From positions 1,302,001 to 1,366,000 of the forward strand of contig VJWM01000025.1 of NCBI GenBank assembly GCA_010909165.1: a stretch of DNA of 64,000 nucleotides. Direction: 5' to 3'. The notes beneath the pieces were generated by a model. The model was not told the origin of the DNA, did not search any database, and saw nothing but the letters and a program-made list of their open reading frames with translations. The DNA is from Anthoceros angustus (lineage: Eukaryota; Plantae; Anthocerotophyta). Shown here in pieces: positions 1-60,425 of this stretch; position 1 is the first letter of the stretch, and every line of letters begins with the position of its first letter. Position numbers and translations under genes: made by a program.

Positions 1-2226
1 TCAGGCAATTGCCCAACACTACGTCATCCAGCAGTCCCCTTTGAACAATCTGTGAGTCCAGCTCCCTGCCCTTCTGTAAGGCACCAGTGCTTGCACAGGC
101 CTTCAGAAGGCAAGCAAAAGTGACATGGTCAGCCAAAATGAGGCCCTCCTGCTCCATTTGTCCGTACAGAACAAGTGCCTCTTGGCTGAGTCCTTGCTGC
201 GCATACCCAGAAATCAGCGCCGTCCACGTCACCACATCCTTGGTGGCCAAGTCTTCAAAAACCTGACGTGCATCATTCAGTTCACCACATTTTGCATACA
301 TGTCCACCAGGCAGTTACCCAACACCACATTGCCCAGCAGTCCTCTTTCCACAATCTGCGAGTGCAGCTGCCGGCCCTTCAGTAAAGCACTAGTGCTCGC
401 ACAGGCCTTTAAAAGGCAAGCAAAAGTGACATGGTCAGCCAAAATGAGGCCCTCCTTCTCCATTTGTCCATACACAACAAGCGCCTCATGTCCGAGTCCT
501 TGCTGTGCATACCCAGCAATCAGGGCATGTCCATGTCACCACATCCTTTGTCCCAAGCTGTCAAAAACCTGCATCTTCCAGTTCACCACATTTTGCATAC
601 ATGTCCACCAGGCAGGTGCCCACCACTACGTCATCCAGCAGTCCTCTTTCACAATCTGTGAGTGCAGCTGCCGGCCCTTCAGTAAAGCACTAGTGCTCGC
701 ACAGGCCTTTAAAAGGCAAGCAAAAGTGACATGGTCAGCCAAAATGAGGCCCTCCTTCTCCATTTGTCCATACACGGCAAGCGCCTCATGGCCGAGTCCT
801 TGCTGTGCATACCCAGCAATTAGCGCTGTCCATGTCACCACATTCTTTGTCCCCAAGCTGTCAAAAACCTGGCGGGCATCTTCCAATTCACCACATTTTG
901 CATACATGTCCACCAGGCAGGTGCCCACCATTATGTCATCCAGCAGTCCTCTTTTCACAATCTGTGAGTGTAGCTGCCTGCCCTTCTGCAATTCACCAGT
1001 GCTTGCACAGGCCTTCAGAAGGCAAGCGAAAGTAACATGGTCAGATAAAATGAGGCCCTCCTGCTCCATTTGTCCATACAGAACAAGCGCCTCATGTCCG
1101 AGCCCTTGCTGTGCATACCCAATCAGGCATTCCATGTCACCACATCCTTTGACGCCATGCTGTCAAAGACCTGGCGTGCATCTTGCAGTTCACCGCATTT
1201 TGCATACATGTCCACCAGGGAGGTGGCAACAAACACGTCTGTAGGAATGCCGCTGTGCAATACATCACAGTGCACATTCCTGCCAGATTCCAAATCAACC
1301 GCAAATGCACAAGCTTGAAGGGCAGCTACAAAGACGTGAGCATCCGCCTTCACTCCTGACCTACGCATCTCATGGTACAGCTGCACGGCCTCATTGGGTT
1401 TCCCATGCTTAGCGTATGCGGAGATTATGGAAGACCACATGAAGACATCTGGTTTCCCCACCTTGGTGAGAACATTTCTGGCTTCCTCTAGCCTACCTCC
1501 ATATGCATACATGCGCAAGATATGATTCCCCAAGTACACATTCGACTCGTACCCAAGTTTGACAGTGAGATCATGAACTCGTCGCCCCAGAATCAAATCC
1601 TTTTTAGCTGTACACAGTTTTAGCACAGTGTAGAACAGAGACCGAGAAATAGCAGACTCTGTCTGCGCCAGAGATTCCAGGGCTCCAACTGCCTCAGAAA
1701 GCTTCCCCTGCTGACATAACACGGTTACGGTTCCAGCCGTTAGGAAGCCCATTTCCGATCCTGCACGCCTGCCAGGTTCAGACTTATTATCCAAAGAGCT
1801 GGACTTGGAAGCAGAGGCACCATGACCCATCTGCATATCCAAGGAAACGAGCTGCTCATCAACCCAAGCTGGTTTAGACACGTCATTTAACCACAGGACC
1901 TCGCCGGACCCCTTACGCCGGAAGTCAGGCAAACCGGAGCTCCTCGTGCCTCGTCTGTTGTCCCACCACATCGTAGGGTCCAGGAAAAATTGTTGCCACA
2001 AGTGCTCCTGCTCCTGGCGACGACCATCGCTGGAAAACCAGTCCCCACCCACACATTTTCTCGGAAGTGGAAGTGCTGGGCTCCTTACACTGCTGCACCT
2101 GGAGGCTTGGTTGTTTGCCAGGGGTTGACTCCGTGAGCTGAGGGGAGCGGGAGCTCCTCGAAGAATCCCTGTACACACGCCAATATGTTGGGTCCACAAA
2201 GAGTCCGGTTGCCATACTGTGGCCAT
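1..2226 (-). pseudogene. PLS-class PPR gene with N-terminal OSB/PDF motif, interrupted by several frameshifts; 3' end lies outside the window
   Basis: ORF 1123..2226 has WWDNRR..PDFRRK..EVLWL followed by PLS motifs. Further LVDMYAKCGEL/VVTWTALIAGY triplets continue in shifted frames down to base 1. Comparing adjacent repeats shows indels at about 1125, 648, 570, 552 and 528. The N-terminus MATVWQPD.. closely matches the gene at 36054..38654. Some indels could be assembly errors. Confidence 0.85.
1849..2007 (-). other. OSB-type PDF motif (complete)
   Basis: EHLWQQFFLDPTMWWDNRRGTRSSGLPDFRRKGSGEVLWLNDVSKPAWVDEQL fits the W..FF..P..WWDNR..K....PDFKHK.TGEALWL motif of plant OSB proteins. Confidence 0.85.
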
Positions 2227-5814: not shown

Positions 5815-8800
5815 TTGTTCGAGCTGGGCATCCCTGTGCTCCAGTTGATTCCTTGTGGTGCATCTTATGCAGTGGAATCGAGTGGAGAAGAAACTGTCTG
5901 GGGCGACTTTTTCGCAGACCCATCACCCTGGGGGGGCAGCAGATCGAACACGGTAACTCTGCCTGGAACCTGGCCCGGAGAAGGTCAGGAGGAGCAGCGG
6001 AGTGAGGTTGTTGAAGCCTTGGATCAGCTGGTAGCTCAAAAATTCTATGTTCCAAACCGTCTCCTCTACCGTGTTTTGGAAGGGTGCATCACTAGGAATG
6101 ACTTTGGTGGGGGAAGGCGGGTTCATGCTCTCACTTTGGAGACTGGACAGCATGGCCCAAGTACGTTCTTGGCCAACCATATCATCCGCATGTATGCTTC
6201 TCATGGAATGTTGCAGGAAGCTGCACAGGTGTTTGCCTCACTGGCTACACCGAACACCTTCTCCTGGTATTATATCGTCTCGGCTCACGCTGAACATGGA
6301 CAGCCGAAGGAGGCCTTACGCCTGTATCAGCAGATGCGGGGGTCATTGGTGAAGGCAGACAGCAGGGTGTTTGTGGCAGCTCTCAAGGCTTGTGGAAGCG
6401 CAGCGGACCTGGAATGTGGGAAGCAGGTGCATGCGGATATTCTGGATAGTCTGCTTGAGCCTGACATGTTTCTTGGCTGCAGCCTAGTTGACATGTATGC
6501 AAAGTGCCAGAGCTTAGGGGATGCACGAAGGGTCTTTGACCAGTTGGGGTCAAGGGATGTGGTGACATGGACTGCCATGATCTCAGGATATGCTCAGCAT
6601 GGGTGTGGTGAAGAAGCGCTTTCCCTTTATAGAGATATGCAGCTGGAGGGTGTTGCTCCAGCTGATCGCGTCACGTTCATGTGTCTCTTGAAAGCATGTG
6701 CCAGCATCGGAGCATTACATGTGGGCAAGGATCTTCATGTACAAATCCAGGAGAAAGGCTTGGGGAGTGATGTGGTTGTTGGCAACTGCTTGGTGGACAT
6801 GTATGCCAAGTGTGGCAGGTTAGAGGATGCACGCAGTGTGTTTGACAAATTGGCCGCAAAGGATGCCGTGACATGGACTGCTATGATCAGTGGGTATCTT
6901 CAGCATGGGCTTGGCCAAGAAGCCCTTGCTCTGTATTCCTGCATGCCGACAGAGGACAAGAGTTTGTTCGATCCTCACACTTTTGTGTGCCTTTTAAAAG
7001 CCTGTTCCAGGGTTAGAGCGCTAGAAGAAGGTAAACAGCTTCATAACCAGATTCGGAGCAGAGGACTGGAAGCAGATATTGTTATTGGCTGCAGCCTGGT
7101 GGAGATGTATGGAAAATGTGGCAGCTTGGAGGATGCCAACAGAGTGTTCGACGGCTTGCTCAACAAAGATGTGGTGACGTGGAATACAATGATTGTGGCA
7201 TATGCTGAGCAGGGGCTTGGTCAAGAAGCCTTCATGATGTATGCCCGGATGAGAGAGGAGGGCATCGCTGTAGCCAATGATGTGACATTCCTGTGTCTCT
7301 TGAAAGCATGTGCCACCAGTGGTATCCTCCACCAGGGGAAGCATCTTCACTTCCACATCAAAAACAGTGGACTGGAGGCTGATGTGGTTGTGGGGAGCAG
7401 TCTAGTGGATATGTATGTGAAGTGCGGGAGTCTAGAGGATGCTCGGAAAGTGTTTGACAGCTTGCCCACCAAAAATGTGGTGACATGGACTGCCATGATT
7501 TCAGGGTATGTGGACAATGGGCTTTGCCAGGAAGCCCTCTCTCTTTATGAAGCAATGGAGCAACAAGGCATCTTTCCAGCTGATGACGTAACGTTTGTGT
7601 GCCTCTTGAAAGCATGTGCTAGTGTTGGAGCTTTACATCAAGGGAAGCAACTCTATTCTCAGATTCAGGAAAGGGCGTCGGAAACAAATGTGCTCGTTGC
7701 CCGGAGCGTGATGGACATGTTTGCAAGATGCAGCAGTCTAGAGGATGCTCGCAGAGTGTTTGACAGTTTGCCTGTTAGAGATGTGGAAACGTGGACTGCG
7801 ATGATTTCTGGGTATGCCCAGCATGGGATGGGCCAGGAAGCTCTTTCACTTTATGCCAGGATGAAACAAGAGTGCCTAGCTACAGCCAGTCATGTTACAT
7901 ATGTGTGCCTCCTGAAAGCCTGTGCCAGCATTGGATCTTTAGCCAAGGGCAAGGAGCTCCACTGTGAGATTCGCGAAAGAGGACTTGATGCCGATTTGAT
8001 TGTGAGCAATTCTCTGGTAGACATGTATGCCAAATGTGGGAGCGTGGAAGATGCTCGCCAGGTGTTTGATCAGTTGTCATCCAAAGATACGGTGACATGG
8101 AATGCCATGATTGCTGGATATGCTCAACACGGGCTTGGTCAGGAAGCACTCAGTCTCCATGAATGCATGCAAGAGGAGGGTATCACTCCTGCAAATCAGG
8201 TGACATATATTTGCCTCCTGAAAGCATGTGCCAGCGTGGGCGCTTTCCATCAAGGGAAGACTCTTCATCTCCTCATCCAGAAAAGAGGGTTGGACACGGA
8301 TGTTGTTCTTGGCAGCGTCCTTGTTGACATGTACGCTAAATGCAGCAGCTTAGAGGAGGCCCGCAGAGTCTTCGACGAGTTACCCACAAGAAACGTGGTC
8401 ACATGGAATTCTCTGCTGAATGCATGCGGACAACACAACGACGGCCGAAGGGCAGTTCAATGTTTCCAGGAGATGGAGCAGCACGGAATCGAGCCTGACG
8501 GCTCCACTTTTCTCTGTCTGCTGGTGGCCTGCAGCCACACTGGGCTGGTCCATGAAGCTAAGATGTATTTCAAGATGATGGTGGATGAGCATGGAATCAC
8601 TCCCAGTGTCTACCACTATAACTGCATGGTCGATGTCCTTGGGCGGTCAGGCCAACTGGACGAGGCTGAGCAACTGCTGCGAAGCACACCATCCAAGGGT
8701 GACTTGGTGGGGTGGATATCTTTGCTGACTGCCTGCCGAAGCCACGGTGATGTCGAGCGTGGAAGGCGATGCTTCGACCAAATCATGCAACTGGACCCCA

Positions 8801-9309: not shown

Positions 9310-9832
9310 GCAGATGCCAAGCTTGGCGAGCACATGAAACGAGAACAAGCGCTTGACGATCAGCCAAGCCGGTGGTGCAGTCCATGAAGAAGGGTCATCC
9401 TGTGGTGTCAAGCCTGATTCAAGGCAGAGCCCGTGCTCGCAAGGGCACCGCCTTGGAGGGTGGCTGCCGAGGCGCTTCCACTCTGCAGGCGGCACCTGAT
9501 CAGCGTCCACCTCTTGGTGAGGCGAGTTCGTCTTTGCTGCCTGCTGGTCCGATTGTGAATTTGAGCCATGTCGCTGGGCGATTTGCATGTGAGATCCGTT
9601 TAGCTGGCTTGCAGAGGAGGCGAGAGGATGGAGCGCCGATCAGTTGCAGTGGTCGGGCAACCGCACATGCCCCGACTTCATGCACGGAGCAAGGGAGGCT
9701 TTGTGGGTGGAATCTTCGGGTCTGAGTGAACGGCCAGCAGGGGGTTCGCACCAACCTGGGTTCAAGTTCTGGAGGTCCAGCCACTCAGCTGCTTTGGGTT
9801 TGTTGATGCATCTGTGACCGTCTTCAGCTCTG

Positions 9833-15168: not shown

Positions 15169-15495
15169 GGACCCTCAGCTGTGAAGTCTGTAGTAAATTT
15201 TGCAGATCCTAGGTGCACAGGCTGATCCCCAGTTCGAACAATGAGGCAGATGCAATGACACAACAGGGAGATAAAACACGGTGGAATCCCTCGTCTTCGC
15301 GTGCTTCATCCGACTTGAACTTCGAGTCCGACGAATGCATTTCTTGCAATGCCCGCAGATAGTAGCATCTCACAATACTATCGGACAAGGTGCGGCACAC
15401 CGACGAGCAGGAGATGTTCACAGACACAGCCAATAAGCTGCACCTACTGTATCTCCTTCGACAAACTATCCCAGCGTCTGTCAGGGGCAAACCAG

Positions 15496-18400
15496 ATGGT
15501 TGTCGTTCTTAAGGCCGGTGAGTGGTATCCTGTGCCTGCTCATAGCACGTCATTCACACAGAGGTCTACTCCGCCTCTTGTTGCAAGCACGTTTGTAGAC
15601 CGGACAAAGGAAGATGCTTCGGATAGCAGGTGTCCTACCAAGGACTCCGCCGGTAGGCACCAGGAGCTCTTGTGGCGACAGTTTTTCCTGGACCATACAC
15701 TCTGGTGGGATAACAGACGACGCAAGAAGAATGTTCGATATTCGCCTGACTTCAGGCATAGGGAATCCCTAGAGGTACTCTGGCTGAACGACAAGAACAA
15801 GCCAGCTTGGGTTGATGGGCAGCTGGCTGCTCTCGATATGCGCCTTGGTCGTGGAGGATACGATAGGGGCGTAACGGCTGAAACCGTGAGCCTATTATGT
15901 GAGCAGGGCGAGCTTGCTGAGGCTGTCGAAGCCTTGGGGGTTCTGGTGCACACAGACTGTTGTGTCTCTCAGTCTCTGTTTTATACTGTCCTGAAAAAAT
16001 GTGTGGGTCAGAGGAATCTGGTTCTGGGTCGCCGAGTTCATGCTCTCACTGTGCAAGGGGAGTGCGAGTCGGACACGTTCTTGTGCAACCACATTATGCA
16101 AATGTATGCTTCTTATGGCAGGTTGCAAGATGCGATGAATGTGTTTGCAGCGGTTGCTAAACCAAATGCATTTACCTGGTCTGCCATAATTTCTGCGCAC
16201 GTGAAACATGGACAAGATAAGCAGGCCATGCTCTTGTATCACCAGATGCGCAGCTCAAGTATGAAGCCAGATGGCTATGTGTTTGTAGCAGCGCTTCAGG
16301 CTTGTGCAAGGGGCCAAGATCTGCAATCTGGGCAGCAGGTGCATGCTGATGTGCTGGCCAGTGGGGTTGAGCCTGATTTGTTTGTTTGTAACTCCCTGGT
16401 GGATATGTATGCAAAGTGTGGATGCTGGGACGAGGCTCGACGAGTGTTTGATGGTCTTGGTCAAAAAGATGTGGTGACATGGAATGCCATGATTGCAGGG
16501 TACTCCCAGCAGGGGATGGGGCAGGAAGCTCTGGATCTTCACAAGGCTATGCAAGACGAAGGTGTCGTTGCACCTGATTCTGTAACATTCGTATGCCTCC
16601 TGCAAGCATGTGCAAGTTGGGGCGCTCCGGCTTTGGAGAAAGGGAAGCAGCTTCATGAACAAATCAGAAGACGAGGTCTCCAGATTGATGTGTTTGTAGC
16701 AAACAATTTGGTGAACATGTATGCGAAGTGTGGCAGCTTGGATGATGCTCAACTAATATTTGATGGACTTCGTCACAGGGACGTGGTCACGTGGAATGCG
16801 CTGATTGGAGGATATTCCCAGCAGGGCAGGGGGCAGCAAGCTCTTGGTCTTCACACAGTCATGCAAGAAGAAGGATCTGTAGCACCAGATGCTGTGACAT
16901 TTAGGTGCCTCCTGCAGGCATGTGCAGGTGTGGGGATCTCAAGTTTGGAGAAGGGGAAGGAGCTTCACAGAGAACTTAGAGAACGAGGGTTTCTGGCTGA
17001 TGTGTTCGTTGGCAACAGTTTGGTAGACATGTATGCAAAGTGTGGCAGCCTCGAGGATGCTCGAAGCGTCTTTGACGGACTGTGTCAAAAAAATGTGGTG
17101 ACGTGGAGTGCCATGATAGCTGGGTATTCCCAGCAAGGCATGGGTGAGGAAGCCCTTGGTCTTTACAAGGCTATGCAACAGGAAGACATCAGTGCTCCTG
17201 ATTCTGTGACTTTTGTGTCCCTCCTGCAGGCATGTGCAAGCACCCAGGCTTTGGAGAAGGGGAGGCAGCTTCATGCACGAATTAAAGAAGAAAACCTTGA
17301 AGCTGACTTGTTTGTAGCCAGCAGTTTGATAAGCATGTATGCAAAGTGCGGCAGCCTGGAGGATGCTCGGGGTGTGTTTGACAAACTTGGCCAAAAGAAT
17401 GTGGTGACATGGAGTGCGATTATAGCAGCATACTCACAGCAAGGCATGGGGCAGGAAGCCCTTGGCCTTTACACGGCTATGCAAGAAGAAGGACTTGTCA
17501 CACCCAATTCTGTCACCTTCGTGAGCCTCCTGCAAGCATGTGCAAGTGTAGGCACGCCGAGTTTGGATAAGGGGAAGCAGCTTCATGCACAAATTAGAGA
17601 AAAAGGGCTTGAGGGTGATGCGTGTATAGCCAACAGTTTGGTATACATGTATGCAAAGTGTGGCAGCTTGGAAGATGCTCAAAGTCTGTTTGATGGACTT
17701 GATACAAAGGATGTGGTGACTTGGAATGCCATGATTGCAGGATATTCCCACCACGGCATGGGCCAGGAAGCCCTTCATCTGTACAGGGCTATGCAATCAG
17801 ACGGCATAGCTGTGCCCGATTCTCTAACATTTGTATGCCTCCTGCAAGCCTGTGCACGCGTGGCAGCTTTGCATGTGGGCAAGCAGCTTCATGCTCAGAT
17901 AGAAGACATGGGCCTTGGAGCCAACGCGACTCTAGGCAACAGTCTGATAAACATGTACGCAAAATCTGGGAGCATGGTTAACGCTCAGCAGATATTCGAT
18001 GCATTACCCGAGAGAGGCGTTGTCACCTGGAGTGCACTGATTGCAGGATATACCCGCCAAGGAGACAGTGAAAAAGTGTTCGACCTGCTTTCCAAAATGA
18101 GAGAGGACGGGATACAGCCAGAAGGCATCACATTCCTTGGTGTACTGACAGTATGCAGTCATACGGGTCTAGTGACCAAGGGCCGAGAGTACTTCGAAGC
18201 CATGAGCACGCAATTTCACATCACTCCCACGGTGGAGCATTACACATGCATGGTGGATCTCCTGGGTCGTGCAGGCCAACTGCGCGAGGCACTATATCTG
18301 GTAACAACAATGCCTGTGCCGCCTAACGCTTCAGTTTGGCACACTCTGTTGGGTGCTTGCCGAAAATGGGGCAACGTGCAGGTGGGACGTCATGCCTTCG

Positions 18401-18696
18401 ATGAAGCCGTGAAGCTAGACGAGAAGGATGCTGCAGCATATGTGCTGATGCTGAACATCTACAGCGGTGCCCAGATGTGGGAGCAGGCTCGCCAAATGCA
18501 GGCCAGGAGAATAGGGATGAGGGCATGGAAGCAGCCAGGACAGACCTGGTGGACAGACATGGACGGACTGGTGCATAATTTTCTGGTCGGGGACAAGAAG
18601 CATCCTGAGAGTGAAGCTATATATGCAACACTGCAACAGCTCCAACCCAAAATCATGAACGAAGGTTATGTCCCACATGTTGCTTCACCGCATTAG
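15496..18696 (+). CDS. PLS-class PPR protein with complete N-terminal PDF motif, E1/E2, WW-type PG box and truncated DYW (no HxE or CxxC)
   Basis: First ATG in the ORF frame is at 15496. PDF motif at 15664..15825, about 7 PLS triplets, then WKQPGQTWW..GDKKHPESEAIY..GYVPHVASPH*. Confidence 0.92.
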   Translation: MVVVLKAGEWYPVPAHSTSFTQRSTPPLVASTFVDRTKEDASDSRCPTKDSAGRHQELLWRQFFLDHTLWWDNRRRKKNVRYSPDFRHRESLEVLWLNDKNKPAWVDGQLAALDMRLGRGGYDRGVTAETVSLLCEQGELAEAVEALGVLVHTDCCVSQSLFYTVLKKCVGQRNLVLGRRVHALTVQGECESDTFLCNHIMQMYASYGRLQDAMNVFAAVAKPNAFTWSAIISAHVKHGQDKQAMLLYHQMRSSSMKPDGYVFVAALQACARGQDLQSGQQVHADVLASGVEPDLFVCNSLVDMYAKCGCWDEARRVFDGLGQKDVVTWNAMIAGYSQQGMGQEALDLHKAMQDEGVVAPDSVTFVCLLQACASWGAPALEKGKQLHEQIRRRGLQIDVFVANNLVNMYAKCGSLDDAQLIFDGLRHRDVVTWNALIGGYSQQGRGQQALGLHTVMQEEGSVAPDAVTFRCLLQACAGVGISSLEKGKELHRELRERGFLADVFVGNSLVDMYAKCGSLEDARSVFDGLCQKNVVTWSAMIAGYSQQGMGEEALGLYKAMQQEDISAPDSVTFVSLLQACASTQALEKGRQLHARIKEENLEADLFVASSLISMYAKCGSLEDARGVFDKLGQKNVVTWSAIIAAYSQQGMGQEALGLYTAMQEEGLVTPNSVTFVSLLQACASVGTPSLDKGKQLHAQIREKGLEGDACIANSLVYMYAKCGSLEDAQSLFDGLDTKDVVTWNAMIAGYSHHGMGQEALHLYRAMQSDGIAVPDSLTFVCLLQACARVAALHVGKQLHAQIEDMGLGANATLGNSLINMYAKSGSMVNAQQIFDALPERGVVTWSALIAGYTRQGDSEKVFDLLSKMREDGIQPEGITFLGVLTVCSHTGLVTKGREYFEAMSTQFHITPTVEHYTCMVDLLGRAGQLREALYLVTTMPVPPNASVWHTLLGACRKWGNVQVGRHAFDEAVKLDEKDAAAYVLMLNIYSGAQMWEQARQMQARRIGMRAWKQPGQTWWTDMDGLVHNFLVGDKKHPESEAIYATLQQLQPKIMNEGYVPHVASPH
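15664..15825 (+). other. OSB-type PDF motif (complete)
   Basis: ELLWRQFFLDHTLWWDNRRRKKNVRYSPDFRHRESLEVLWLNDKNKPAWVDGQL. Confidence 0.85.
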
Positions 18697-27499: not shown

Positions 27500-30484
27500 A
27501 TGCTGGAAGCATCGAGGGGCAGCAGCGTGGCAATCAACTCAGCCCGTTCAAGGGAGGGTCTGGCTGGGAAAGGTGGGCGCCAGGAGGTCCTCTGGCCAGA
27601 CAACGCCTACAAGCCTGCTTGCGCGGATGGGCACTTGGCTGCTCTGAATGTGCAAGTGGGTCGTGTACCGGATGATAGTGGCCCTCGCAGGTCTGCAGGA
27701 TACGGAAAGTGGTTGACCGCTGAAACTGTGAGCCAACTATGTGAGCGAGGACTGCTCACAGAGGCTGTCGAGACTCTGGGTTTTCTGGTGCAGGCAGACC
27801 GTCGTATTTCTCAGTCTCTTCTTTATGGTGTGTTAAAAGAATGTCTGGTCCAGAAGAATCTCATCCTGGGCCGCCGTGTACACGCTCTCACAGTGAAAGG
27901 GGGTTATGCTTCGGACACGTTCTTGTGTAACCACATCCTGCGAATGTATGCTTCTCATGCCAGGTTGCAAGAAGCCATAGATGTGTTTACTTTGGTTACC
28001 ACGCCAGATGCCTTCATCTGGTCTTCCATAATCTCTGCACATGTTAAGCACGGGCTAGATAAGGAGGCCATACAACTGTACCATCAGATGCGCAGGTCAA
28101 ATGTGAAGCCGGATGGCCATGTGTTTGTAGCAGCACTTCAGGCTTGTGCGAGGGGAGCGGACTTAAAAACTGGACAGCAGGTGCATGCTGATGTGTTGGC
28201 CAGTGGGGTTGAGCCTGATTTGTTTGTTTGTAGTTGTCTGGTGGACATGTACGCAAAATGCAGCAACTTGGAAGATGCTCAGAGAGTGTTTGATGGGCTT
28301 GGTGAGAAAGATGCGGTGTTGTGGAATGCCATGATGGCGGGTTATTCCCAGCAGGGCATGGGGCACGAAGCGCTTCGTCTTTATAGTGCTATGCAAGAAG
28401 AAGGCATTGCTACACCTACTCCTGTGACATTTGTATGCCTCCTACAGGCATGTGCAAATGTGGGTACTCCAAGCTTGGACCAGGGCAAGCAGCTGCATGC
28501 ACAAATTAGAGAACAAGGACTTGAAGCTGATTTGCTCATAACCAACAGTTTGGTAAGCATGTACGCAAAGTGTGGCAGCTTGGAAGACGCTCAAAGATTG
28601 TTTGACAGAATTTGTCACAAAGATCTGGTGACATGGAATGCCTTGATTGCAGGATATTCCCAGGAGGGGATGGTGGAGAACGCCCTTGGTCTTTACTGGG
28701 CCATGCAAGAAGAAGGCAATGTGGCACCCGATTCTGTGACATTTGTGTGTGTCTTGCAGGCATGTGCAAGTGTTGGCGCCCCCGCTTTGGAGAGGGGGAA
28801 GCAGCTTCATGCACAAATCAGAGAACGACGACTTCAAGCTGACGAGTTTGTAGCCAGCAGCCTGGTCAACATGTATGCAAAGTGTGGCAGGCTAGAGGAT
28901 GCTCAGGACGTCTTCGACGGACTTTTTCAGAAAACTTTGGTGACATGGAATGCCATGATATGTGGATATTCTCAGCATGGCATGGGTGAGCAAGCTCTTC
29001 ATCTCTACAGTGCCCTGCAAGAAGGCGGCACTGCTGTGCCTGATTCTGTGACATTTGTGTCTCTCCTGCAGGCATGTGCAAGTGTGGGCACCTCGGCTTT
29101 AAAGAAGGGGAGAGAGATCCATGCACAGATACAAGAGCAAACACTTACAATTGATGGTGTTTTAGGCTGCAGCCTGGTAAACATGTATGCAAAGTGTGGT
29201 AGCCTGGAAGCTGCTCAGACTGTGTTTGACGGGCTTCCTCAGAAAGATTTGGTGATGTGGAATGCCATGATTGCAGGATATTCCCAGACGGGCATGGGCC
29301 AAGAAGCTCTTCATCTTTACAGCACCATGCGAGATGAAGGCATTGTGGCACCAGGTTCTGTGACATTTGTGTCCCTCTTGCAGGCATGTGCAAATGTAGG
29401 CACCCTAGCTTTGGAGACGGGGAAGCAGCTTCATGCAGAGATAGAAGAAGCAGGGCTGCAGGCTGACGTGGTTGTAGCCAATAGCTTGGTGAACATGTAT
29501 GCAAAGTGTGGCAGCTTAGAAGATGCTCAACGAGTGTTTGATAGCCTTCCTTGGAAAGATGTGGTAACATGGACTGCTCTAATATCAGGATATGTGCAGG
29601 AAGACATGGGTCAGGAAGCCCTTCTTGTCTATAAGGCTATGCAAGAAGAAGACATGGCTGCACCCGACTCCGTGACATTTGTTTGCCTCCTGCAGGCATG
29701 TGCAAGTGTGGCAGCTTTGCATGTTGGAAGGCAACTACATGCAGATGTTGAACAACAGGGGCGTCAAGCAGATGTGACCGTAGCCAACAGTTTGATAATC
29801 ATGTATGCAAAGTCAGGCAGTATGGTGGATGCTCAGCAGGTGTTTGATGCATTACCTACAAGAAATGCTGTCACCTGGAATGCACTGATCGCAGGCTACA
29901 CCAGTCAAGGGGACAGTGAGGAGGTCTTTGAATTGGTTCTGAGAATGCAAGAGGATGGCATACAACCAGATCGCATCACATTCCTTAGTGTACTCCAGGT
30001 ATGCAGTCATAGAGGTATAGTGAAAAAGGGGCGAGAGTACTTTGAGACTATGAGCAAACATTATGGCCTCACTCCCACTGTGGAGCACTATACATGCATG
30101 GTGGATCTCCTGGGTCGTGCAAATCATCTGGACGAGGCTCTCGCTCTGGCAGCAACAATGCCAATACTGCCTAGTGCTTCAGTTTGGCACGCTCTGTTGT
30201 GTGCGAGTCAAAAGTGGAGCAATGTGGATGTGGGACGGCATGCTTTCGACCGAGCAGTACAGCTGAGCAAGAACGATGCGGCAGCCTATGTGTTGATGTC
30301 GAACATATACACCGGTGCCAAGATGTGGGAGCAGGCGCACGGGATGCAGGCGAGCAGAGCAAGCATTGGGGCATGGAAGCAACCAGGCCAGAGCTGGTGG
30401 ACAGATATGGACGGACGGGTGAATAGTTTTGTGGTCGGCGATAAGAATCGTTTCGAGAGGGAGGAGGAATATATGCAAGGCTGA
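27500..30484 (+). CDS. PLS-class PPR protein, paralog of 15496..18696, with PDF remnant, WW-type PG box and truncated DYW
   Basis: QEVLWPDNAYKPACADGHL remnant, about 7 PLS triplets, then WKQPGQSWW..GDKNRFEREEEYMQG*. The 5' structure is uncertain. Confidence 0.9.
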   Translation: MLEASRGSSVAINSARSREGLAGKGGRQEVLWPDNAYKPACADGHLAALNVQVGRVPDDSGPRRSAGYGKWLTAETVSQLCERGLLTEAVETLGFLVQADRRISQSLLYGVLKECLVQKNLILGRRVHALTVKGGYASDTFLCNHILRMYASHARLQEAIDVFTLVTTPDAFIWSSIISAHVKHGLDKEAIQLYHQMRRSNVKPDGHVFVAALQACARGADLKTGQQVHADVLASGVEPDLFVCSCLVDMYAKCSNLEDAQRVFDGLGEKDAVLWNAMMAGYSQQGMGHEALRLYSAMQEEGIATPTPVTFVCLLQACANVGTPSLDQGKQLHAQIREQGLEADLLITNSLVSMYAKCGSLEDAQRLFDRICHKDLVTWNALIAGYSQEGMVENALGLYWAMQEEGNVAPDSVTFVCVLQACASVGAPALERGKQLHAQIRERRLQADEFVASSLVNMYAKCGRLEDAQDVFDGLFQKTLVTWNAMICGYSQHGMGEQALHLYSALQEGGTAVPDSVTFVSLLQACASVGTSALKKGREIHAQIQEQTLTIDGVLGCSLVNMYAKCGSLEAAQTVFDGLPQKDLVMWNAMIAGYSQTGMGQEALHLYSTMRDEGIVAPGSVTFVSLLQACANVGTLALETGKQLHAEIEEAGLQADVVVANSLVNMYAKCGSLEDAQRVFDSLPWKDVVTWTALISGYVQEDMGQEALLVYKAMQEEDMAAPDSVTFVCLLQACASVAALHVGRQLHADVEQQGRQADVTVANSLIIMYAKSGSMVDAQQVFDALPTRNAVTWNALIAGYTSQGDSEEVFELVLRMQEDGIQPDRITFLSVLQVCSHRGIVKKGREYFETMSKHYGLTPTVEHYTCMVDLLGRANHLDEALALAATMPILPSASVWHALLCASQKWSNVDVGRHAFDRAVQLSKNDAAAYVLMSNIYTGAKMWEQAHGMQASRASIGAWKQPGQSWWTDMDGRVNSFVVGDKNRFEREEEYMQG

Positions 30485-31400: not shown

Positions 31401-34400
31401 TTATCATACTCTAGGGCTGTAGTAGGGCCGTAATCTTATATCCCGTATCTCCTCAATAGCATATGAGATCTTCCACTATGGGGTAGATAGGTTTAGGGTC
31501 ATCATATTCATCAGGGAACTATCATATACAGTAATCTAGAGCTGTGAGTTTACCTATACATATTTTCAACTTACATATTAAATACCTATAAATTACATGC
31601 AAAATTACACCCACCAAAAAAAGGGTGTTATTGCCATGTATTATATGTAATTAAAATTTTAATTATATGTTCATATGTAATAGATTATTATTTCAACTAG
31701 GAAGTTACTGGTTGAAGTCAGAAAAAAGGAGTAGGTTTTGCAAGATTTGGTTTTACAGGATTAGTTAAACATGGAAGCGCATACGCTAATTCCCGCCATT
31801 TTCATCACAAAGAAAACCAATAGTTGAGGCGACATTCTACGAGAGATGGATCTTGTCTGAATTCGATCTACCTAACTCACAATCACAAGGATTTGCTTAA
31901 GACATATTTGCGGGAACAATTGATCGAGTGGATCCAAGTTTCTGGTCGGATAAATATGGCCCGTCATGTCTGTGCAAGATCGAGAAAAGACATGTGATGT
32001 TGCTGCTCTTTAAAGAGCTAATTTCGTCGGGACACACTGATTCCGTCGAAACAAAAACGAAATTTGTAACTAGCCTAGTGCTAATAATGAACTTATTTAA
32101 GTGATCTCATTTTGTCTCAGGGATCACTTAAATAAGTTCTTTGCCACAACATAAGGAAGGCTTAAACCTCACTAAGAAGCGCACGTGTGAGTTTCCCGCA
32201 TGTTGCTCAAGCAGCGGATCTTTATTCTATTGAAATCTATGCCATACAGAGGGCATGGCCAAATGCAATCCAGTTGGCAATTTGTAGGCCATCTTTATGA
32301 AATATCATGGATAGCCAGTGTGTACCCATAAGGACACAGAGATGGTTCGGAGAGGGCTCACCCATAAAGTTGTTCTACGGCCGACCGAAAAAGAACTGCT
32401 ATAATTTTAGATGAAAAACCTACAATGATGAAGAGAATTCACATAAAGATCCCACTAGGCTAAGCACCAAAAAGAGTGATTTCATATCTAGTAAAAATCT
32501 TGGCTAATTCCAGTTGACTAGAGTGAGAAATTAGCCTAGATTTTTACTAGCAAAAATAAATCAGAGGAGAACGAATCAACAATATTCAAGATGGAAATGC
32601 GGCTAGAATAAAATAATTTAACCCGTCTTCTTTTGGATGCTGTGATCACATAATAACGTGAAAGCTTCGTAGGCCCTATTAGTATTCGAATCGTCCAGAA
32701 GGGGTTATTGCACAAAAGTCCTCACACTGTCTTTTGCAGAGGGTTGAAGCCCAATTAGTGTATTATAATATACATATTTTGTAGATAATAACTTCAACTA
32801 TAGATGCCTAAACCTTGAACCATTAGACTTTGTATTAGCAACCACAAGCCACAAGTACTCTGAATTGCGGCTGTGAGCTTGCATTGAGCTTTGTAGATTC
32901 CAACTAAGAACATCTTGGATTATGAACACTTTGATTTCTGGCTATGACTTTGTGGATTATACATTAGCTATTCTCAACCCCAGTGGTATGCACTTTTTTT
33001 TTTTCTGTCTGAGAGGAGTGAAGTATGAGTCAATGACCTGCTTGTTTAATGTTGCAATGAGACATGAATCCTTGCAGTATTTAAAGCGCATCCAGCCAAA
33101 AAATGCAAATGCATTCTAATCCTACCTTAAGCTTATGCGGTCAAACTTCTCATGATTGGCTTGCCCCAAATGGACAAGAGGGCGTATGGATCCGACCTCC
33201 CTGCCAACGTTCATAAAGCCAATTCAATTGTTGCAAAATTAGCGGGCGGGAGAGCCTCAAAGGAAACAAAATGAGTGAAATGAAGAACATGATTTGAAAC
33301 AATTGCCTTGGCGACATAACTTCCTTTGACATGGCCCCAATTTAGGTATGTTAGCTAATGTATAGCACAAAAGGTAAAGCAATCTTCAATCATTTCACAT
33401 GAAATGTCTATATACGTGCAAAAGGCTACGCTTAATCTGCGTTAGGTCTAATTAGCTTTATTGATGTCATGACTAAAGATGAAAATAAAAACCTCCAATT
33501 GGCCCAAAGCTAGGGTAGCGTATGCTGCAACAATGCTGTTAGTTATTGTGGGCGATGACGCAAGACGTGATTTCTTTCAGTTAGTATGTCTAGAACTTTT
33601 AATTGCATTCTTGTTATAAATCGGCTAACTTCTATTGCACGAGGTATGTATGGAAGTGGAGAATATTAAATTATAGGTATCTAATGGATTTTATTTTGGA
33701 ATGATGTTGCATATTAGTTCATCAGTTTATTTGGTCCTTTTTGTGAAGCATATCTTATGATGGAAGGGGAACAAATAATAATAGGTGACGCCCATTGGAC
33801 TTTATATAAGATGCAATTTCATGTTGATGAAACCACGAAAATTACATTTATGAATTTCTTTGGAGGTGTGGATAATACTTGAGATATGAAAAGGAGATGT
33901 GATGTGTTTGAGGAAATGAATAGAGTGCTTCCATCAATTAGAGAGAAAAAAAAGTTGATTGGCTAGCACAATGTTCTAATCCTAGATGTAATGGTCGATC
34001 CGAAGCATTGTTATAAATTAGTCAAAATCTCTTAATATGAGAGGGTGTTTGCTGAAGCTCTGATGAAAAACTTGTGAACCAAAAAGGACAACAACCTTAC
34101 TTTCCCTGTTGACTACCCACTGGTTGGACTCAAATAGGTATTATATAGATATTGAAAGTTAATTTGAACCAACTTTCATGTACGCTTATGGCTCATAGTG
34201 TTGGGAGTTTTTTGCACCTAGCTAAGGGATGTTGCTAAGAAATTACTTAGTTTACCTCCTACAACAACAGGGAGCCAGATTTTGGAGTGCATGGCGACAC
34301 ATCTGGAAGTACAAATGAGCTTCTATCAAGGTCGATCAGGTTGCAATGTTTGGTTTATGTTTATTTCAATAGAGGGATTCTTACATGCCTAGGAGATAGC

Positions 34401-35900
34401 ATAGATGCGAACGATTATGTAATGTATGTCGATAGTCTAGCTTCTCTTCAAGTGACAATGGATGTAGAGACTTGTAACAATACTTTAACAACTTAGCACT
34501 GAGCAATGATTCATAATTAATATTTTAAATATTTTAAGCACATATATATATACTACATTGTACGTATATTGAAGAATGGTTACATGTCATATTATGTGTA
34601 AAGTTATGTGTCATGACAGTAATTACATGTAAATGTGTAACGCCGAGTGTCAGTGGGGGGTTTACAATATAGATTCACAGCTATCTCGTGTCCCATATCC
34701 CTTTCGTGCATGTTTCAAGTAGTCAATGGGTTCACCTTATCCATCATTGAAGTGATCATGGTAGCCCTCCTGCACATCTTTCAAGTAGTCCATGGGTTCA
34801 TCATATTCATCCTTGAAGTGATCATAATAGCCTCTCTCCAAATCTCCCGAGAAATCCATCATGTGTTTAATGATGGGACATTGGCAAGGGAGAGTATTGT
34901 CTCATCTAAATCACGGAATACCATTACGGGTTATATCGTCATGTGAACCACGGGATATCATTGGGATGTTGTCATATGTCGAAGAGAAGATACAAACATT
35001 TTCATCTATCTATCATACCATCTCGAACATCTCATAAGATCATGGACTCACACGAGGAGTTCAAAAGTAAGAGAGTTGATTTTCCTTAATGGTAAACATC
35101 AATACATCTATCCCCTATATTGAAACAACATTATACTAACGAGAGACAAAATTCCACCAATCTAGGAGGCTATTGTCTTATATAGGTACTTATTGAAGGC
35201 TCTAATTAGGTTCATCCTAGTTGAATTATAATTATTTATTACTAATGATGTAAGATATTTATAAGAAGCAGTCTAAAATTGAATATGAAATGTACAGCGG
35301 GTTAGCGGAATGACAACCTAGGTCCTGCGGGAAATTTTCAATGAGGCCACCAACCGTGGAGTGACTTAAAAAACTACCGTATCCCGAATGGTAATTCTAT
35401 GTTAATTAATTAAAATTAGTAAAATTTGAAAATTCAGAAATTATTATACTTAAAATGCCCAATTTGTCAAAATTTACAAGTTTAAGATGCCAGAAACAAG
35501 GAAACTAGGGTTTGTGTGGAAAGTTAGAGCTTGTTTAGGGGAGGTCTATATACATTCATCAATTCTATATAGATACCTATGTATTCTAATGGTTGTTGTA
35601 ATTTGATAAAATTATTTTTCATAAAAGTTAAAAGTTTGGAAATATAAATATTTATGTTAAACGATATTTTTTACAAAAAATAATTATTTCGACATTACCC
35701 TGCTGAACCACCCCTCGGGGTACGGTATTGAAATTCCGTTTTTGGTTACCGAATTTATTGAAAACGCATCAAAGTTTTTTGGGGATCTCATTCGGCCGTC
35801 TGTAGATGAATTGTAAGTGGTAGCGGGGCAGAGCGTCGGAATTGACAGGTCCTGATGTTGTGGCAAAGAATTGGACTTAGACTTGGAGAACGAGTGAGAG
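31400..35900. mobile_element. AT-rich island, probably decayed transposon relics (family unresolved)
   Basis: Abrupt shift to visibly AT-rich sequence with no intact genes. Stop-riddled coding-like stretches include EIYAIQRAWPNAIQLAIC near 32240 (weakly MULE-like) and HNVLILDVMVDPKH near 33970 (weakly hAT-like). Confidence 0.4.
34711..34840. repeat. Two-copy 60-bp tandem repeat
   Basis: tttcaagtagtc(a/c)atgggttca..t.tcc.t...tgaagtgatcat..tagcc occurs twice. Confidence 0.75.
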
Positions 35901-36053
35901 TCCAGTCGACCGATGTTGCTATCATAAGCTTAACACAGTCCTTGTCTTGCGGCCGGCCAGCTACGAATCGAGCCGACTCCTACTTATTCCACCGACTCCC
36001 ACCAGTACCATTTCACCTGCAGAGCGCTGGCTAGGTAGTCCAATTCTCCGTTC

Positions 36054-38654
36054 TCATTGTCGACCCTTGCAACTGCAAGAACCAGCTGCGAATCGATGCA
36101 CACGGTACCCATCCCTTACAACAATGTCTCTCTTTTCAACCCTTGACAAGACTTCGGTGCTACTGTGGCAGTCACTGCACATGCGGAGATTCTTTGTTAC
36201 CATCAGAGGTGTGCCACTCGGGGTGTTCAAAAGACCGTACGCCAAAGCGAGCTTCTCAGCATGCCCACAAAGCGCATCTTCCTTGTCCTTCTCAGACAGT
36301 GGCTTCAACACCAGGTTTGTGTGGGGTACATGACCCCCTTCCTCCTTCAGGCGTGCATTCATACTCTCTACCGTGAGAGAAATATCCTCCCTGTTTTCTC
36401 CCACCACAAATGTATGTATTTGCTTTTTTACCTCAATGCCCGCAACTGCAGGTTTCTTGTTAGCTCCTGCTGCAATTCTCTGTTTTTCAATCCTGTCTAC
36501 GTCAGTCCACCTACCTGCATCTGCATAGACATTGGCCATGAGCACATATGGGGACGCCTGCTTAGGGTCGATTCTAACAAGACCTTCAAAACAACGTGTC
36601 GCCCTCTCTACATCCCCTTGACCTTTGCAGGCATTCAGCAAAGATGTCAACCCCACAACATTGTTTTGGCTCTCACACGACAGTAGCATCTTCTCTGCCT
36701 CATCTAAATGGCCCGCCCGTCCAAGAAGCTCAACCATGCAAGAGTAATGCTCGACAGAAGGTTGGATGCCGTGCCGTTCAACCATGGCATCAAAGTGCTT
36801 GCGACCCTGCTTCACCAGTCCCTCCTGACTGCATGCTACGAAAAGGCAAGTAAAAGTAGCCTCGTCAGGCTGAATGCCAGCCGCTAACATCTCCTCAAAA
36901 CAAGCTAGTGCATAGTGACCTTCACCACAGGTGCCACACCCAGCTATCAGAGCCGTCCATGTCACCACATCCTTTGTAGATAAACTGTCAAAAACCCTGC
37001 GTGCATCTTCCAGTTGCCCACAATTTGCATACATCTCCACCAGGCAGGTGCCCACCACTGTGTTTTCTAGCTTTCCTCTTTCCACAACCTGTGAGTGCAG
37101 CTGCCTGCCCTTGTCTAAGGCACCAGCACTAGAACAAGCCTTCAATAGGCAAGCAAAAGTAAAATCGTCAGCCAAAATTAGGCCCTCTTCCTCCATTTGT
37201 CCATACAGAACAAGCGCCTCTTGACCAAGCCCATGATTTGCATATCCAGCAATCAGGGCTGTCCACGTCACCACATTTTTTGTGGCCAAACTGTCAAAGA
37301 CCCGGCGTGCATCTTCCAGTTCGCCACATTTTGCATACATGTCCACCAGGCAGGTGCCCACCACAATGTCAGATTCTAGTTGCCTGCTTAAACGAATTTG
37401 TGAGTGCAGCTGTCTGCCCTTCTGTAAGGCACCAGCACTTGCACAGGCCTTCAGAAGGTAAGCAAAAGTAAAATGGTCAGCCAAAATCAGGCCCTCCTCC
37501 TCCATTTGTCCATACAAAACAAGCGCCTCTTGAGCGAGCCCACCATTTGTGTACCCAGCGAGCAGGGCATTCCACGTCACCACATTTTTTGAGGCCAAGC
37601 TGTCGAAAACACTCCGTGCAGCATCCAGTTCCCCACATTTTGCATACATGTCCACCAGGCAGCTGCCAACAAACAAGTTAGGAGGAATGCCACTGAGCAA
37701 CACATCCGAGTGCACTTTCCTGCCAGATTCCAAGTCTGCGGTCAGTGCACAACCTTGAAGGGCAGCTGCGAAGACGTGAGCGTTAGCTTTTACACCCGAC
37801 TCACGCATCTCAAAGTACAGCTGTATGGCCTCATTAGGTTTCCCATGTTTAGCATGGGCTGAGATTATGGAAAACCACATGAAGACATCTGGTTTGCCCA
37901 CCCTGGTGAACACATCCATGGCCTCTTGCAACCTTCCCACACATGCGTACATGCGCAAGATGTGGTTCCCCACGTATGCATTTGCCTCGTACCCAAGTTT
38001 GACCGAGAGATCATGAACTCGGCGCCCCACAACCAGATCCTTCTTGGCTGCACAAAGTTTCAGCACAGTATAAAAGAGAGACTGAGAGACAGGGCAGTCT
38101 GCTTGCGCCAGAAACTCCAGGGCTCCAACGGCCTCAGTAAGCTTCCCCTGACGACATAGCGAGCTCACAGTCACTGCCGCTGCGCCAATTTCCGGTCCTG
38201 CATGCCTGCCAGGCTCAGCTGTGGAGGGAGACGCACCATGACCCATCTGCATATCCAAACCAACGAGCAGCTCGTCCACCCACGGAGGCTTGAAAAAGTT
38301 GTCTAACCACAGGACCTCGCCGGATCCCTTATGCCGGAAGTCAGGTGAGCGGGAGCTCTTCTTATCTCGCCTGTTATCCCACCACATGGTAGGGTCCAAA
38401 AAAAATCCTCGCCACAGGAGCTCCTGCTCCTGGGAACGGCTGTCGCTGGACAATCCTTGCCCAGGTATACATTTTCCAGGAAGTACTGGGTTCCTTACGC
38501 TGCTGCACCTCCAGGCTTGGTTGTTTGCCAGCGGTTGACCCCCTAAGGTGAGATGAGGGTTAGCTCCTGGTAGAATCCCTGTACATCCACCAATCTGCTG
38601 GGTCCACAACCGATCGGGTTGCCATACTGTGGCCATCTTACAGGCACAACTCAT
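36054..38654 (-). CDS. PLS-class PPR RNA-editing factor with complete N-terminal PDF motif and DYW:KP domain, C-terminus GRQ
   Basis: PDF motif at 38265..38423, about 4 PLS triplets, then KKPAVAGIEV, LCGHAEKLALAYGLL, RMCSDCH and SCSCKGRQ*. Confidence 0.95.
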   Translation of the reverse strand: MSCACKMATVWQPDRLWTQQIGGCTGILPGANPHLTLGGQPLANNQAWRCSSVRNPVLPGKCIPGQGLSSDSRSQEQELLWRGFFLDPTMWWDNRRDKKSSRSPDFRHKGSGEVLWLDNFFKPPWVDELLVGLDMQMGHGASPSTAEPGRHAGPEIGAAAVTVSSLCRQGKLTEAVGALEFLAQADCPVSQSLFYTVLKLCAAKKDLVVGRRVHDLSVKLGYEANAYVGNHILRMYACVGRLQEAMDVFTRVGKPDVFMWFSIISAHAKHGKPNEAIQLYFEMRESGVKANAHVFAAALQGCALTADLESGRKVHSDVLLSGIPPNLFVGSCLVDMYAKCGELDAARSVFDSLASKNVVTWNALLAGYTNGGLAQEALVLYGQMEEEGLILADHFTFAYLLKACASAGALQKGRQLHSQIRLSRQLESDIVVGTCLVDMYAKCGELEDARRVFDSLATKNVVTWTALIAGYANHGLGQEALVLYGQMEEEGLILADDFTFACLLKACSSAGALDKGRQLHSQVVERGKLENTVVGTCLVEMYANCGQLEDARRVFDSLSTKDVVTWTALIAGCGTCGEGHYALACFEEMLAAGIQPDEATFTCLFVACSQEGLVKQGRKHFDAMVERHGIQPSVEHYSCMVELLGRAGHLDEAEKMLLSCESQNNVVGLTSLLNACKGQGDVERATRCFEGLVRIDPKQASPYVLMANVYADAGRWTDVDRIEKQRIAAGANKKPAVAGIEVKKQIHTFVVGENREDISLTVESMNARLKEEGGHVPHTNLVLKPLSEKDKEDALCGHAEKLALAYGLLNTPSGTPLMVTKNLRMCSDCHSSTEVLSRVEKRDIVVRDGYRVHRFAAGSCSCKGRQ
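38265..38423 (-). other. OSB-type PDF motif (complete)
   Basis: ELLWRGFFLDPTMWWDNRRDKKSSRSPDFRHKGSGEVLWLDNFFKPPWVDELL. Confidence 0.88.
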
Positions 38655-39026
38655 GTTGAGCAGAGCGAACAGTGCAGGCCGTGGCAGGATGCATAGAACC
38701 TATGGATGACAACAACAACAAACCGTGGAGAGCACACACTAGCCTTCAGTGAGTGCAGTATGGACGGCCAACAACGGAAAAGACGAACGCTTGCGGCTTT
38801 CAGAACCGCGCTCTCACACAAAAGCCGGCCGTGAAGATAAGGCGCGGTTCACTAATACGACCAGTACCAGTCTCTAGAGAACCTTCGTAGAGGCAAAGAT
38901 TTCTACGACGTGCGAATTGTTGGAACCGTGAACAATGACATTACCAGTAAGCACCGGAGGGAGAGAGGCCAAAGGGCTGGAGTCTTTTCTATAAATTTTT
39001 GTTTAACCGAACTTACAAGGTCATAC

Positions 39027-60144: not shown

Positions 60145-60425
60145 GCACGTCTGAGGAGGACTCAAATGTGGGAGAGCTAGTTGTTTGAAATCCAGTAAGC
60201 CCTGACTTCCTCCACTGATCAAGCTGAAAATTCCCCCTGGTCACAACCGTCACCTGGGTCTCATTGACTCTGCAACAATTCCCGAATCCAAGCTGGAAGT
60301 TGCCCTGGTTGTTGACTCTGAATCCGACGAGATGCCGTAAGCTTGCATCTCAATTATCCTCTGATCACTGTGGGTAACATCAGCCTTGTTGTAAAACTCC
60401 TCAGCCTTCAGCTTGGATCCCTTGA
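60145..60425 (-). pseudogene. Duplicated 3' end of the adjacent WAK-like kinase gene
   Basis: RIKGSKLKAEEFYNKADVTHSDQRIIEMQAYGISSDSESTTRATSSLDSGIVAESMRPR* is identical to the end of 62926..63171. Confidence 0.9.

Follow-up and report, generated by a model that had tools for sequence, protein, structure and literature searches.

A DYW:KP-type pentatricopeptide repeat protein of a hornwort with an OSB-type PDF domain at its N-terminus

We analyzed a gene on the minus strand at 36054-38654 of a 64,000-nt stretch of the Anthoceros angustus genome (contig VJWM01000025.1, positions 1,302,001 to 1,366,000; hereafter the window), which consists of an uninterrupted open reading frame (ORF) of 866 aa with its stop codon at 36054-36056. 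By sequence search and predicted fold, the N-terminal motif of the encoded protein is a true PDF domain of the type found in the OSB proteins, and its homology is solid. The remainder of the protein is a PLS-type pentatricopeptide repeat (PPR) array with E motifs and a terminal DYW:KP domain, so that the product, judged by its sequence, appears to be a hornwort-type, GRP-like DYW:KP editor of the U-to-C type. The initial annotation, made from the letters alone, had claimed a PDF-like motif between the N-terminus and the PPR repeats and an intact DYW:KP end; both are borne out, with the ORF at exactly these coordinates and KKPAVAG, HAE and CSDCH in place.

Results

The N-terminal motif is an OSB-type PDF domain

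A hidden Markov model (HMM) search had been proposed in the initial annotation as the way to check the OSB assignment, and the outcome upholds that assignment. An exhaustive HMMER search with residues 70-135 against 1.84 billion representatives matched 616 proteins at E≤1e-3, 186 at E≤1e-10 and 18 at E≤1e-30. Most of the 616 matches carry 1-13 PDF copies C-terminal to an SSB-type OB fold (PF00436), which is the OSB architecture, and the profile made from them detects the motif of the 36054-38654 gene at E 8.8e-26. The string ELLWRGFF...KPPWVDELL, quoted in the initial annotation, corresponds to residues 78-130. Positions conserved in OSB-linked PDFs at 80% or more are all present (W, P, W, D, R, K, PDF, K, LW, P, W, L); in the alignment columns D24 and F37 are invariant, and W12, W22, R26, K29, P35, D36, L46, W47, P54 and W56 are conserved at 90% or more.

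The predicted structure points the same way. AlphaFold2, run on the PDF domain with a 146-sequence alignment, gave a compact fold of a helix, three short strands and a helix (predicted local distance difference test score, pLDDT, 93.2; predicted template modeling score, pTM, 0.79). A Foldseek search of 550,129 Swiss-Prot models with this domain matched only Arabidopsis OSB1-OSB4, each at its PDF motif. The best superposition was with OSB1 residues 179-241 (template modeling score, TM, 0.89; root-mean-square deviation 1.2 Å; 42% identity), with predicted structures on both sides, and the AlphaFold Database cluster representatives that match the fold are OSB-like proteins. No solved structure was found in the PDB: sequence queries, whether the lone sequence or the PDF profile, returned chance-level matches only, and the fold search with the PDF domain had a best E of 4.7. 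The ESM Atlas feature search with residues 60-150 gave sub-threshold matches only (cosine ≤0.54), and region-restricted word searches, with 14 candidates each, returned nothing or Ceratodon paralogs only, blanks that mean little.

The domain is under purifying selection. Comparison of the window's three PDF-bearing paralogs gave a Ka/Ks of 0.14-0.26 for the PDF domain (53 codons) versus 0.25-0.27 for the PPR part that follows, and identity to the 15349 paralog was 24-26% in the ~70 residues before the PDF and 64-68% within it.

Some of the 616 matches are PDF motifs in very long proteins, such as P0041 (1526 aa) and P0099 (1920 aa); one protein of this kind has a kinesin motor domain, and another is matched over 19 stretches. 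They may represent fused gene models or additional architectures.

The C-terminal domain is of the DYW:KP type

DYW:KP domains are marked by a KPAxA-type N-terminal box that replaces the PG box. In the 866-aa protein this box is KPAVAG at residues 734-739 (in the context KKPAVAG), where canonical homologs have PGCS or PGRS. In the register that starts at residue 734, the domain is 133 aa long, its positions 88 and 92 are Lys and Met, and it contains both HAE and CSDCH. These features agree with the published hallmarks of DYW:KP, namely a changed PG box, HAE, a length of 132/133 aa without xHP, and Lys88 together with Met92 (PMC9478123, PMC11845758); the PG box itself is said there only to differ (PMC9478123). 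Hornwort DYW:KP domains fall into the subgroups GRP and DRH, named after their last three residues, and GRP members have Glu at the K103 position (PMC9478123, PMC11845758). The protein ends in the GRP-like triplet GRQ and has Glu at the K103 position (...SSTEVLS...), and its closest homolog, the Logan transcript ORF P0177, ends in GRP. Of the features of PLS-class editors, the P/L/S array, E1/E2 and a DYW deaminase with HxE...CxxC are all present. U-to-C activity has been demonstrated only for the designer proteins KP2, KP3 and KP6 (PMC9478123).

The PDF domain is predicted to be tethered to the PPR solenoid

The layout of the protein is given in Table 1. Pfam recognizes ~10 PPR stretches (PF13041, E 4.1e-64; PF01535, E 2.7e-60; PF12854, E 2e-41) and matches no family in the first 165 residues, because it has no PDF model. 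A second AlphaFold2 model, of residues 70-335 with 62 homologs, has both the PDF domain and the PPR solenoid folded, with helical hairpins from residue 154 onward and pLDDT below 50 at protein residues 140-154 (model residues 71-85), in the stretch that leads from the PDF domain to the first PPR helix. The PDF domain is thus modeled as a separate unit joined to the solenoid by a flexible linker of ~20 aa. As for the start codon, the start of the 1123 paralog is the equivalent of Met7.

Membership of the OSB family itself was considered and rejected. Pfam matched no OB fold, PF00436 or other, in the 866-aa protein, which is not an OSB for that reason; its PDF is N-terminal and is followed by PPRs.

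The gene is intact and apparently transcribed through the PDF domain

Contigs of RNA run X1, which carries the same species label, match the gene with 0 mismatches at 35699-36088, 36291-36464, 37085-37209, 37710-37844, 38008-38145, 38121-38379, 38377-38646 and 38618-38897. These are the longest pieces only, with gaps in the tiling shown, and they demonstrate presence, not absence. Depth of X1 drops to ~0 in both flanks of the gene. We considered an intron that would excise the PDF motif, which the initial annotation had named as a danger to its reading, and rejected it: the contigs are exact and contiguous across 38121-38897, without a splice through the motif, and no splice joint within the N-terminal part of the gene is among the X1 joints listed. 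The only joint listed (37342/37632, CC..TC ends, 20-nt side) falls in repetitive PPR sequence, and we take it for cross-mapping among repeats or paralogs. The contigs fit an intronless mRNA with a 5' untranslated region (UTR) of ~240 nt and with the PDF domain included. This copy of the PDF-PLS-E-DYW:KP gene is intact and apparently transcribed; no exact match to the 866-aa protein is on record in public assemblies.

Directly 3' of the gene, window 32000-36000 has a GC content of 0.37-0.38 versus ~0.50 elsewhere, and RNA-run depth is zero over most of 35400-35698, within this low-GC stretch.

PDF-PPR fusions are spread across seedless land plants

We searched for the same combination among the best full-length homologs. 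N-terminal PDF domains, in 1-3 copies, are present in 46 of the best 120, and PDF-PPR proteins were seen in Ceratopteris, Adiantum, Selaginella, Diphasiastrum, Ceratodon, Sphagnum (PDF-PLS) and Calypogeia. A DYW domain is also present in 24 of the 46, and 21 of these, which belong to Diphasiastrum, the moss Ceratodon and the liverwort Calypogeia, are of the canonical HSE/DYW type. N-terminal PDFs are also found on E-only PLS proteins which, together with the HSE/DYW ones, come from lycophytes, ferns, mosses and a liverwort. In lycophyte PPR proteins there are up to three PDF copies, reaching about residue 340. Only two of the best 120 homologs combine PDF with an HAE-type domain, the Logan transcript ORFs P0177 (59% identity) and P0249 (52%, ending in DRH), and these are the closest relatives of the 866-aa protein.

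The initial annotation had implied a special link between PDF and U-to-C editing, and this is not supported: the same PDF sits on many HSE/DYW and E-only PLS proteins, and 2 of 12 HAE-type homologs carry it. A fusion specific to U-to-C editors is therefore rejected, since among the best 120 homologs PDF is mostly on canonical DYW proteins. The co-occurrence of PDF, PLS and DYW that had been proposed as a check was found across seedless plants, but mostly on proteins of the C-to-U type, and is not special to this gene.

A tree built from 187 non-redundant PDF motifs groups those linked to PPRs together (7 label changes versus 47 when shuffled), and the PDF copies of the window fall in an all-PPR group with SH-aLRT support of 96, in a short alignment with weak resolution. 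PPR-linked PDFs may have a single origin. The Swiss-Prot fold search matched no Arabidopsis PPR protein with a PDF fold, and no Ginkgo (Gb_) PPR among the best 120 homologs has a PDF. Judged from these sequences, the PDF-PPR fusion is old, frequent in seedless land plants, borne by PLS editors of all catalytic types, and repeatedly lost.

Paralogs and neighboring genes in the window

Six related PLS-PPR genes, lying on both strands, are clustered in window 1-30500, with PDF intact in 3/6 and decayed in 3/6 (Table 1). Intact PDFs are on two intact genes of the window (36054-38654 and 15349-18696), and a third is on the broken copy at 1-2226, in which PPR matches go on in other frames at 647-1126, 570-650 and 2-529. 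The PDF profile does not detect the half motif at 27584-27649. Both hornwort DYW:KP subgroups stand side by side in the cluster, with the endings DHL, DRH and GRQ, and the two E-only copies end in a 'WKQPGQ.WW' box.

At 13547-15168 (+), between two PPR genes, a JmjC ORF (PF08007) is followed directly, though in another frame, by an ORF for a RIOX1 C-terminal winged helix (PF21233), an arrangement that resembles a single ribosomal-oxygenase-like gene interrupted by a short intron or a frameshift. At 48877-51111 (-) lies a 744-aa PPR protein in which Pfam finds only PPR repeat families, with no E, DYW or PDF match; we read it as a P-type protein, and it has no relation to the PLS cluster. A GDP-fucose protein O-fucosyltransferase (PF10250) at 53404-54249 (-) and a Ser/Thr protein kinase (PF00069) at 63129-63971 (-) are represented by ORF pieces, probably exons of genes with introns. 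The peptide-coding string PGQLPAWIRELLQSQ is present twice on the minus strand, at 60270-60299 and 62946-62975, 2.7 kb apart, and its repetition near the kinase gene suggests a dispersed or tandem repeat.

Table 1. Features of the 36054-38654 gene and PDF-bearing or PDF-derived features of its paralogs (window coordinates)
Feature	Position	Strand	Remarks
Apparent transcript	35699..38897	-	~355 nt 3' UTR, coding sequence, ~243 nt 5' UTR; from RNA-run contigs
Fast-diverging presequence, presumed organelle targeting peptide, residues 1-72	38439..38654	-	Start may be Met1 or Met7
PDF domain, residues 73-134 (helix, three short strands, helix)	38253..38438	-	HMM, AlphaFold2, Foldseek
Low-complexity linker, predicted disordered, residues 135-153	38196..38252	-	pLDDT <50 at residues 140-154
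PLS-type PPR array, roughly 15 repeats, residues 154-680	36615..38195	-	Pfam PPR, PPR_1, PPR_2, PPR_3; helical hairpins
E1/E2 motifs, residues 681-733	36456..36614	-	Pfam PF20431 E_motif at 681-741, E 1.6e-14
DYW:KP domain, 133 aa, residues 734-866	36057..36455	-	PF14432 DYW_deaminase at 774-864, E 2.6e-32
Paralog, intact 1115-aa PDF-PLS-E protein without DYW	15349..18696	+	PDF at 15658-15837, profile E 3.6e-21
Paralog, intact PDF, frame-broken PPR array reaching the window start	1..2226	-	PDF at 1837-2019, E 1.2e-24
First half of a PDF motif, decayed, N-terminal on the intact PLS-DYW:KP gene 5815-9309 (ends DHL)	5884..5946	+	E 0.26, not significant alone; homologous position
PDF core (PDFMH...ALWV), decayed and out of frame, 5' of the PLS-DYW:KP gene 9833-13198 (ends DRH)	9659..9718	+	E 0.0066
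C-terminal half of PDF motif only, at the start of the PLS-E gene 27500-30484	27584..27649	+	Likeness to the 15349 paralog judged by eye

Discussion

Possible role of the PDF domain

On balance we lean towards a reading in which the protein is a nuclear-encoded, presumably organelle-targeted DYW:KP editor whose PDF domain plays an accessory part, binding single-stranded nucleic acid on the 5' side of the PPR footprint without regard to sequence. In AtOSB1, the PDF motif is sufficient for binding single-stranded DNA (ssDNA) (reviewed in PMC6963530). PPR tracts bind RNA in parallel orientation, and editing takes place 4 nt 3' of the last repeat (PMC10482289). The N-terminal repeats would then point towards the RNA 5' end and, because there are roughly 15 repeats and a tether of 20 aa, the PDF domain would lie at least ~20 nt 5' of the edited base, from where it could grip single-stranded nucleic acid, raising affinity or on-rate, or holding the upstream RNA open. 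The PDF copy number of 1-3 per PPR protein is variable as in OSBs, which fits an avidity module, and sequence 5' of the PPR footprint is known to affect editing efficiency (PMC10482289).

Several points weigh against this reading. First, the kind of run from which the X1 contigs come was guessed ('RNA?'). Second, PDF is absent in 10 of the 12 HAE-type homologs among the best 120, some of which are truncated ORF calls and at least one of which has a full N-terminus. Third, the 5815, 9833 and 27500 paralogs keep long PPR ORFs and have lost the PDF, so that the domain is not required for target recognition or catalysis; it looks accessory, and in the mechanism above it would be helpful yet dispensable. 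Fourth, the upstream-context effect in PPR56 was seen with an N-terminally truncated protein (PMC10482289) and is for that reason independent of an N-terminal domain. At last, OSB1 and OSB2 are reported to prefer ssDNA over dsDNA or RNA (reviewed in PMC4166229), a preference that would favor a DNA tether over an RNA clamp.

This last point leads to the main rival, which we regard as fairly unlikely and as the strongest of the alternatives: the PDF domain may bind organellar ssDNA in transcription bubbles, R-loops or replication and recombination intermediates, so that the editor would be concentrated at the nucleoid and editing would be co-transcriptional, which was the leading proposal of the initial annotation. 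The core residues are the same in PPR-linked and OSB-linked PDFs, and the close predicted match to the OSB1 PDF fits this explanation as well as the published ssDNA preference does (PMC4166229). However, PPR-linked PDFs cluster apart in the tree, so that their specificity may have shifted, and the domain has been repeatedly lost in paralogs.

The other alternatives are less likely than either a nucleic-acid clamp or an ssDNA tether. There is only a slim chance that the PDF is a protein-protein module, which would recruit an OSB, another editor or a helper, or would oligomerize, and could act as a cis helper in lineages without MORF proteins. PDF-PPR fusions were found only in seedless plants, with none on Arabidopsis PPRs (Swiss-Prot fold search) or on the listed Ginkgo PPRs; MORFs are reported to be restricted to seed plants (PMC13386178), and AtOSB2 is a tetramer (PMC6963530). 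The complementary distribution of PDF and MORF is, however, a correlation from a limited sample, and the conserved Trp/Phe/Arg/Lys pattern would rather be expected of a nucleic-acid binder. Equally improbable in our judgment is that the PDF is an inherited passenger, left over from one fusion early in land-plant history and now of little or no functional importance in this gene. Such a history would account for the recurrent PDF decay in neighboring paralogs that keep long PPR ORFs and for the many KP-type homologs that have no PDF, but the Ka/Ks of the PDF domain is at or below that of the PPR array, all of its conserved positions are kept, and the fusion has been retained from liverworts to ferns. 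It is very improbable that the PDF motif, which does lie within the first 134 residues, is part of the import presequence and is cut off to leave a mature editor without it, since a conserved 60-aa domain, modeled with a confident fold and a flexible tether and preceded by a fast-evolving stretch of ~70 aa, speaks against its loss with the transit peptide, and the lycophyte copies extend to about residue 340, far beyond usual presequence lengths.

Comparison with known systems

OSB1-OSB4 of Arabidopsis are described as organellar ssDNA-binding proteins in Zaegel et al. 2006, as cited in PMC6963530, PMC4166229 and PMC13393729. They share with the 866-aa protein the PDF domain of ~60 aa (34-45% identity, TM 0.72-0.89). 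In OSBs, however, a central SSB-like OB fold precedes a C-terminal PDF, whereas here the PDF is N-terminal, there is no OB fold, and the partners are PPR, E and DYW.

With the hornwort DYW:KP proteins of the GRP and DRH subgroups, the 866-aa protein has in common the PLS array, E1/E2 and a 133-aa domain with KPAxA, HAE, Lys88, Met92 and CxxCH and without xHP. In contrast, an N-terminal PDF is not mentioned in the papers on these proteins (PMC9478123, PMC11845758), and our protein has one and ends in GRQ rather than GRP. The designer proteins KP2 and KP3, for which hornwort GRP and DRH proteins served as templates, consist of P2-L2-S2-E1-E2-DYW only. The moss editor PPR56 is likewise a single-polypeptide PLS-E-DYW editor of a MORF-less lineage in which RNA 5' of the footprint modulates editing; it differs in having been assayed without its N-terminus, with only 14 aa before the first PPR (PMC10482289).

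The seedless-plant PDF-PLS proteins, for example Diphasiastrum KAJ7570437, Selaginella XP_024517303 and Ceratopteris KAH7429238, have the same order of presequence, 1-3 PDFs, linker, PLS array and E or DYW. They are 30-45% identical to the 866-aa protein, and most are HSE/DYW proteins (C-to-U type) or end at E. The PDF-PLS-DYW proteins among them are annotated merely as hypothetical or PPR proteins.

An OSB-type PDF domain at the N-terminus of PLS editing factors is apparently undescribed. We found no paper describing a PDF-PPR fusion in the literature searched, where an earlier remark on PDF outside OSBs may nonetheless exist, and this agrees with the impression given in the initial annotation. 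In the literature searched, papers that use the term 'PDF motif', those on OSBs included, make no mention of PPR fusions, and a 2026 survey of the OSB family kept only proteins with both an OB fold and a PDF and never mentions PPR (PMC13393729). The fusion may have been overlooked because the domain is invisible to Pfam and because that survey was restricted to proteins with both OB fold and PDF.

Implications for organellar RNA editing

PLS-PPR editors are usually treated as a presequence, a PPR array and an E/DYW end. If a third or more of the PLS editors of seedless plants carry a PDF domain, a part of the editing machinery has been overlooked in assays; heterologous assays and designer editors have been made without the N-terminus (PMC10482289, PMC9478123). 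Going beyond this gene, one could see the PDF as an ancestral cis-encoded helper that grips single-stranded nucleic acid, either upstream RNA or nucleoid ssDNA, and boosts PLS editors in MORF-less lineages, having been lost in seed plants; in this full form the proposal is speculative, and we hold it unlikely. The finding may bear on the coupling of editing to the nucleoid, on how MORF-less plants edit efficiently, and on better programmable U-to-C editors. If the helper reading is true, U-to-C and C-to-U tools, whose efficiency is low, could gain from a restored PDF domain, given that the editors used in heterologous and designer work have been built without their N-termini.

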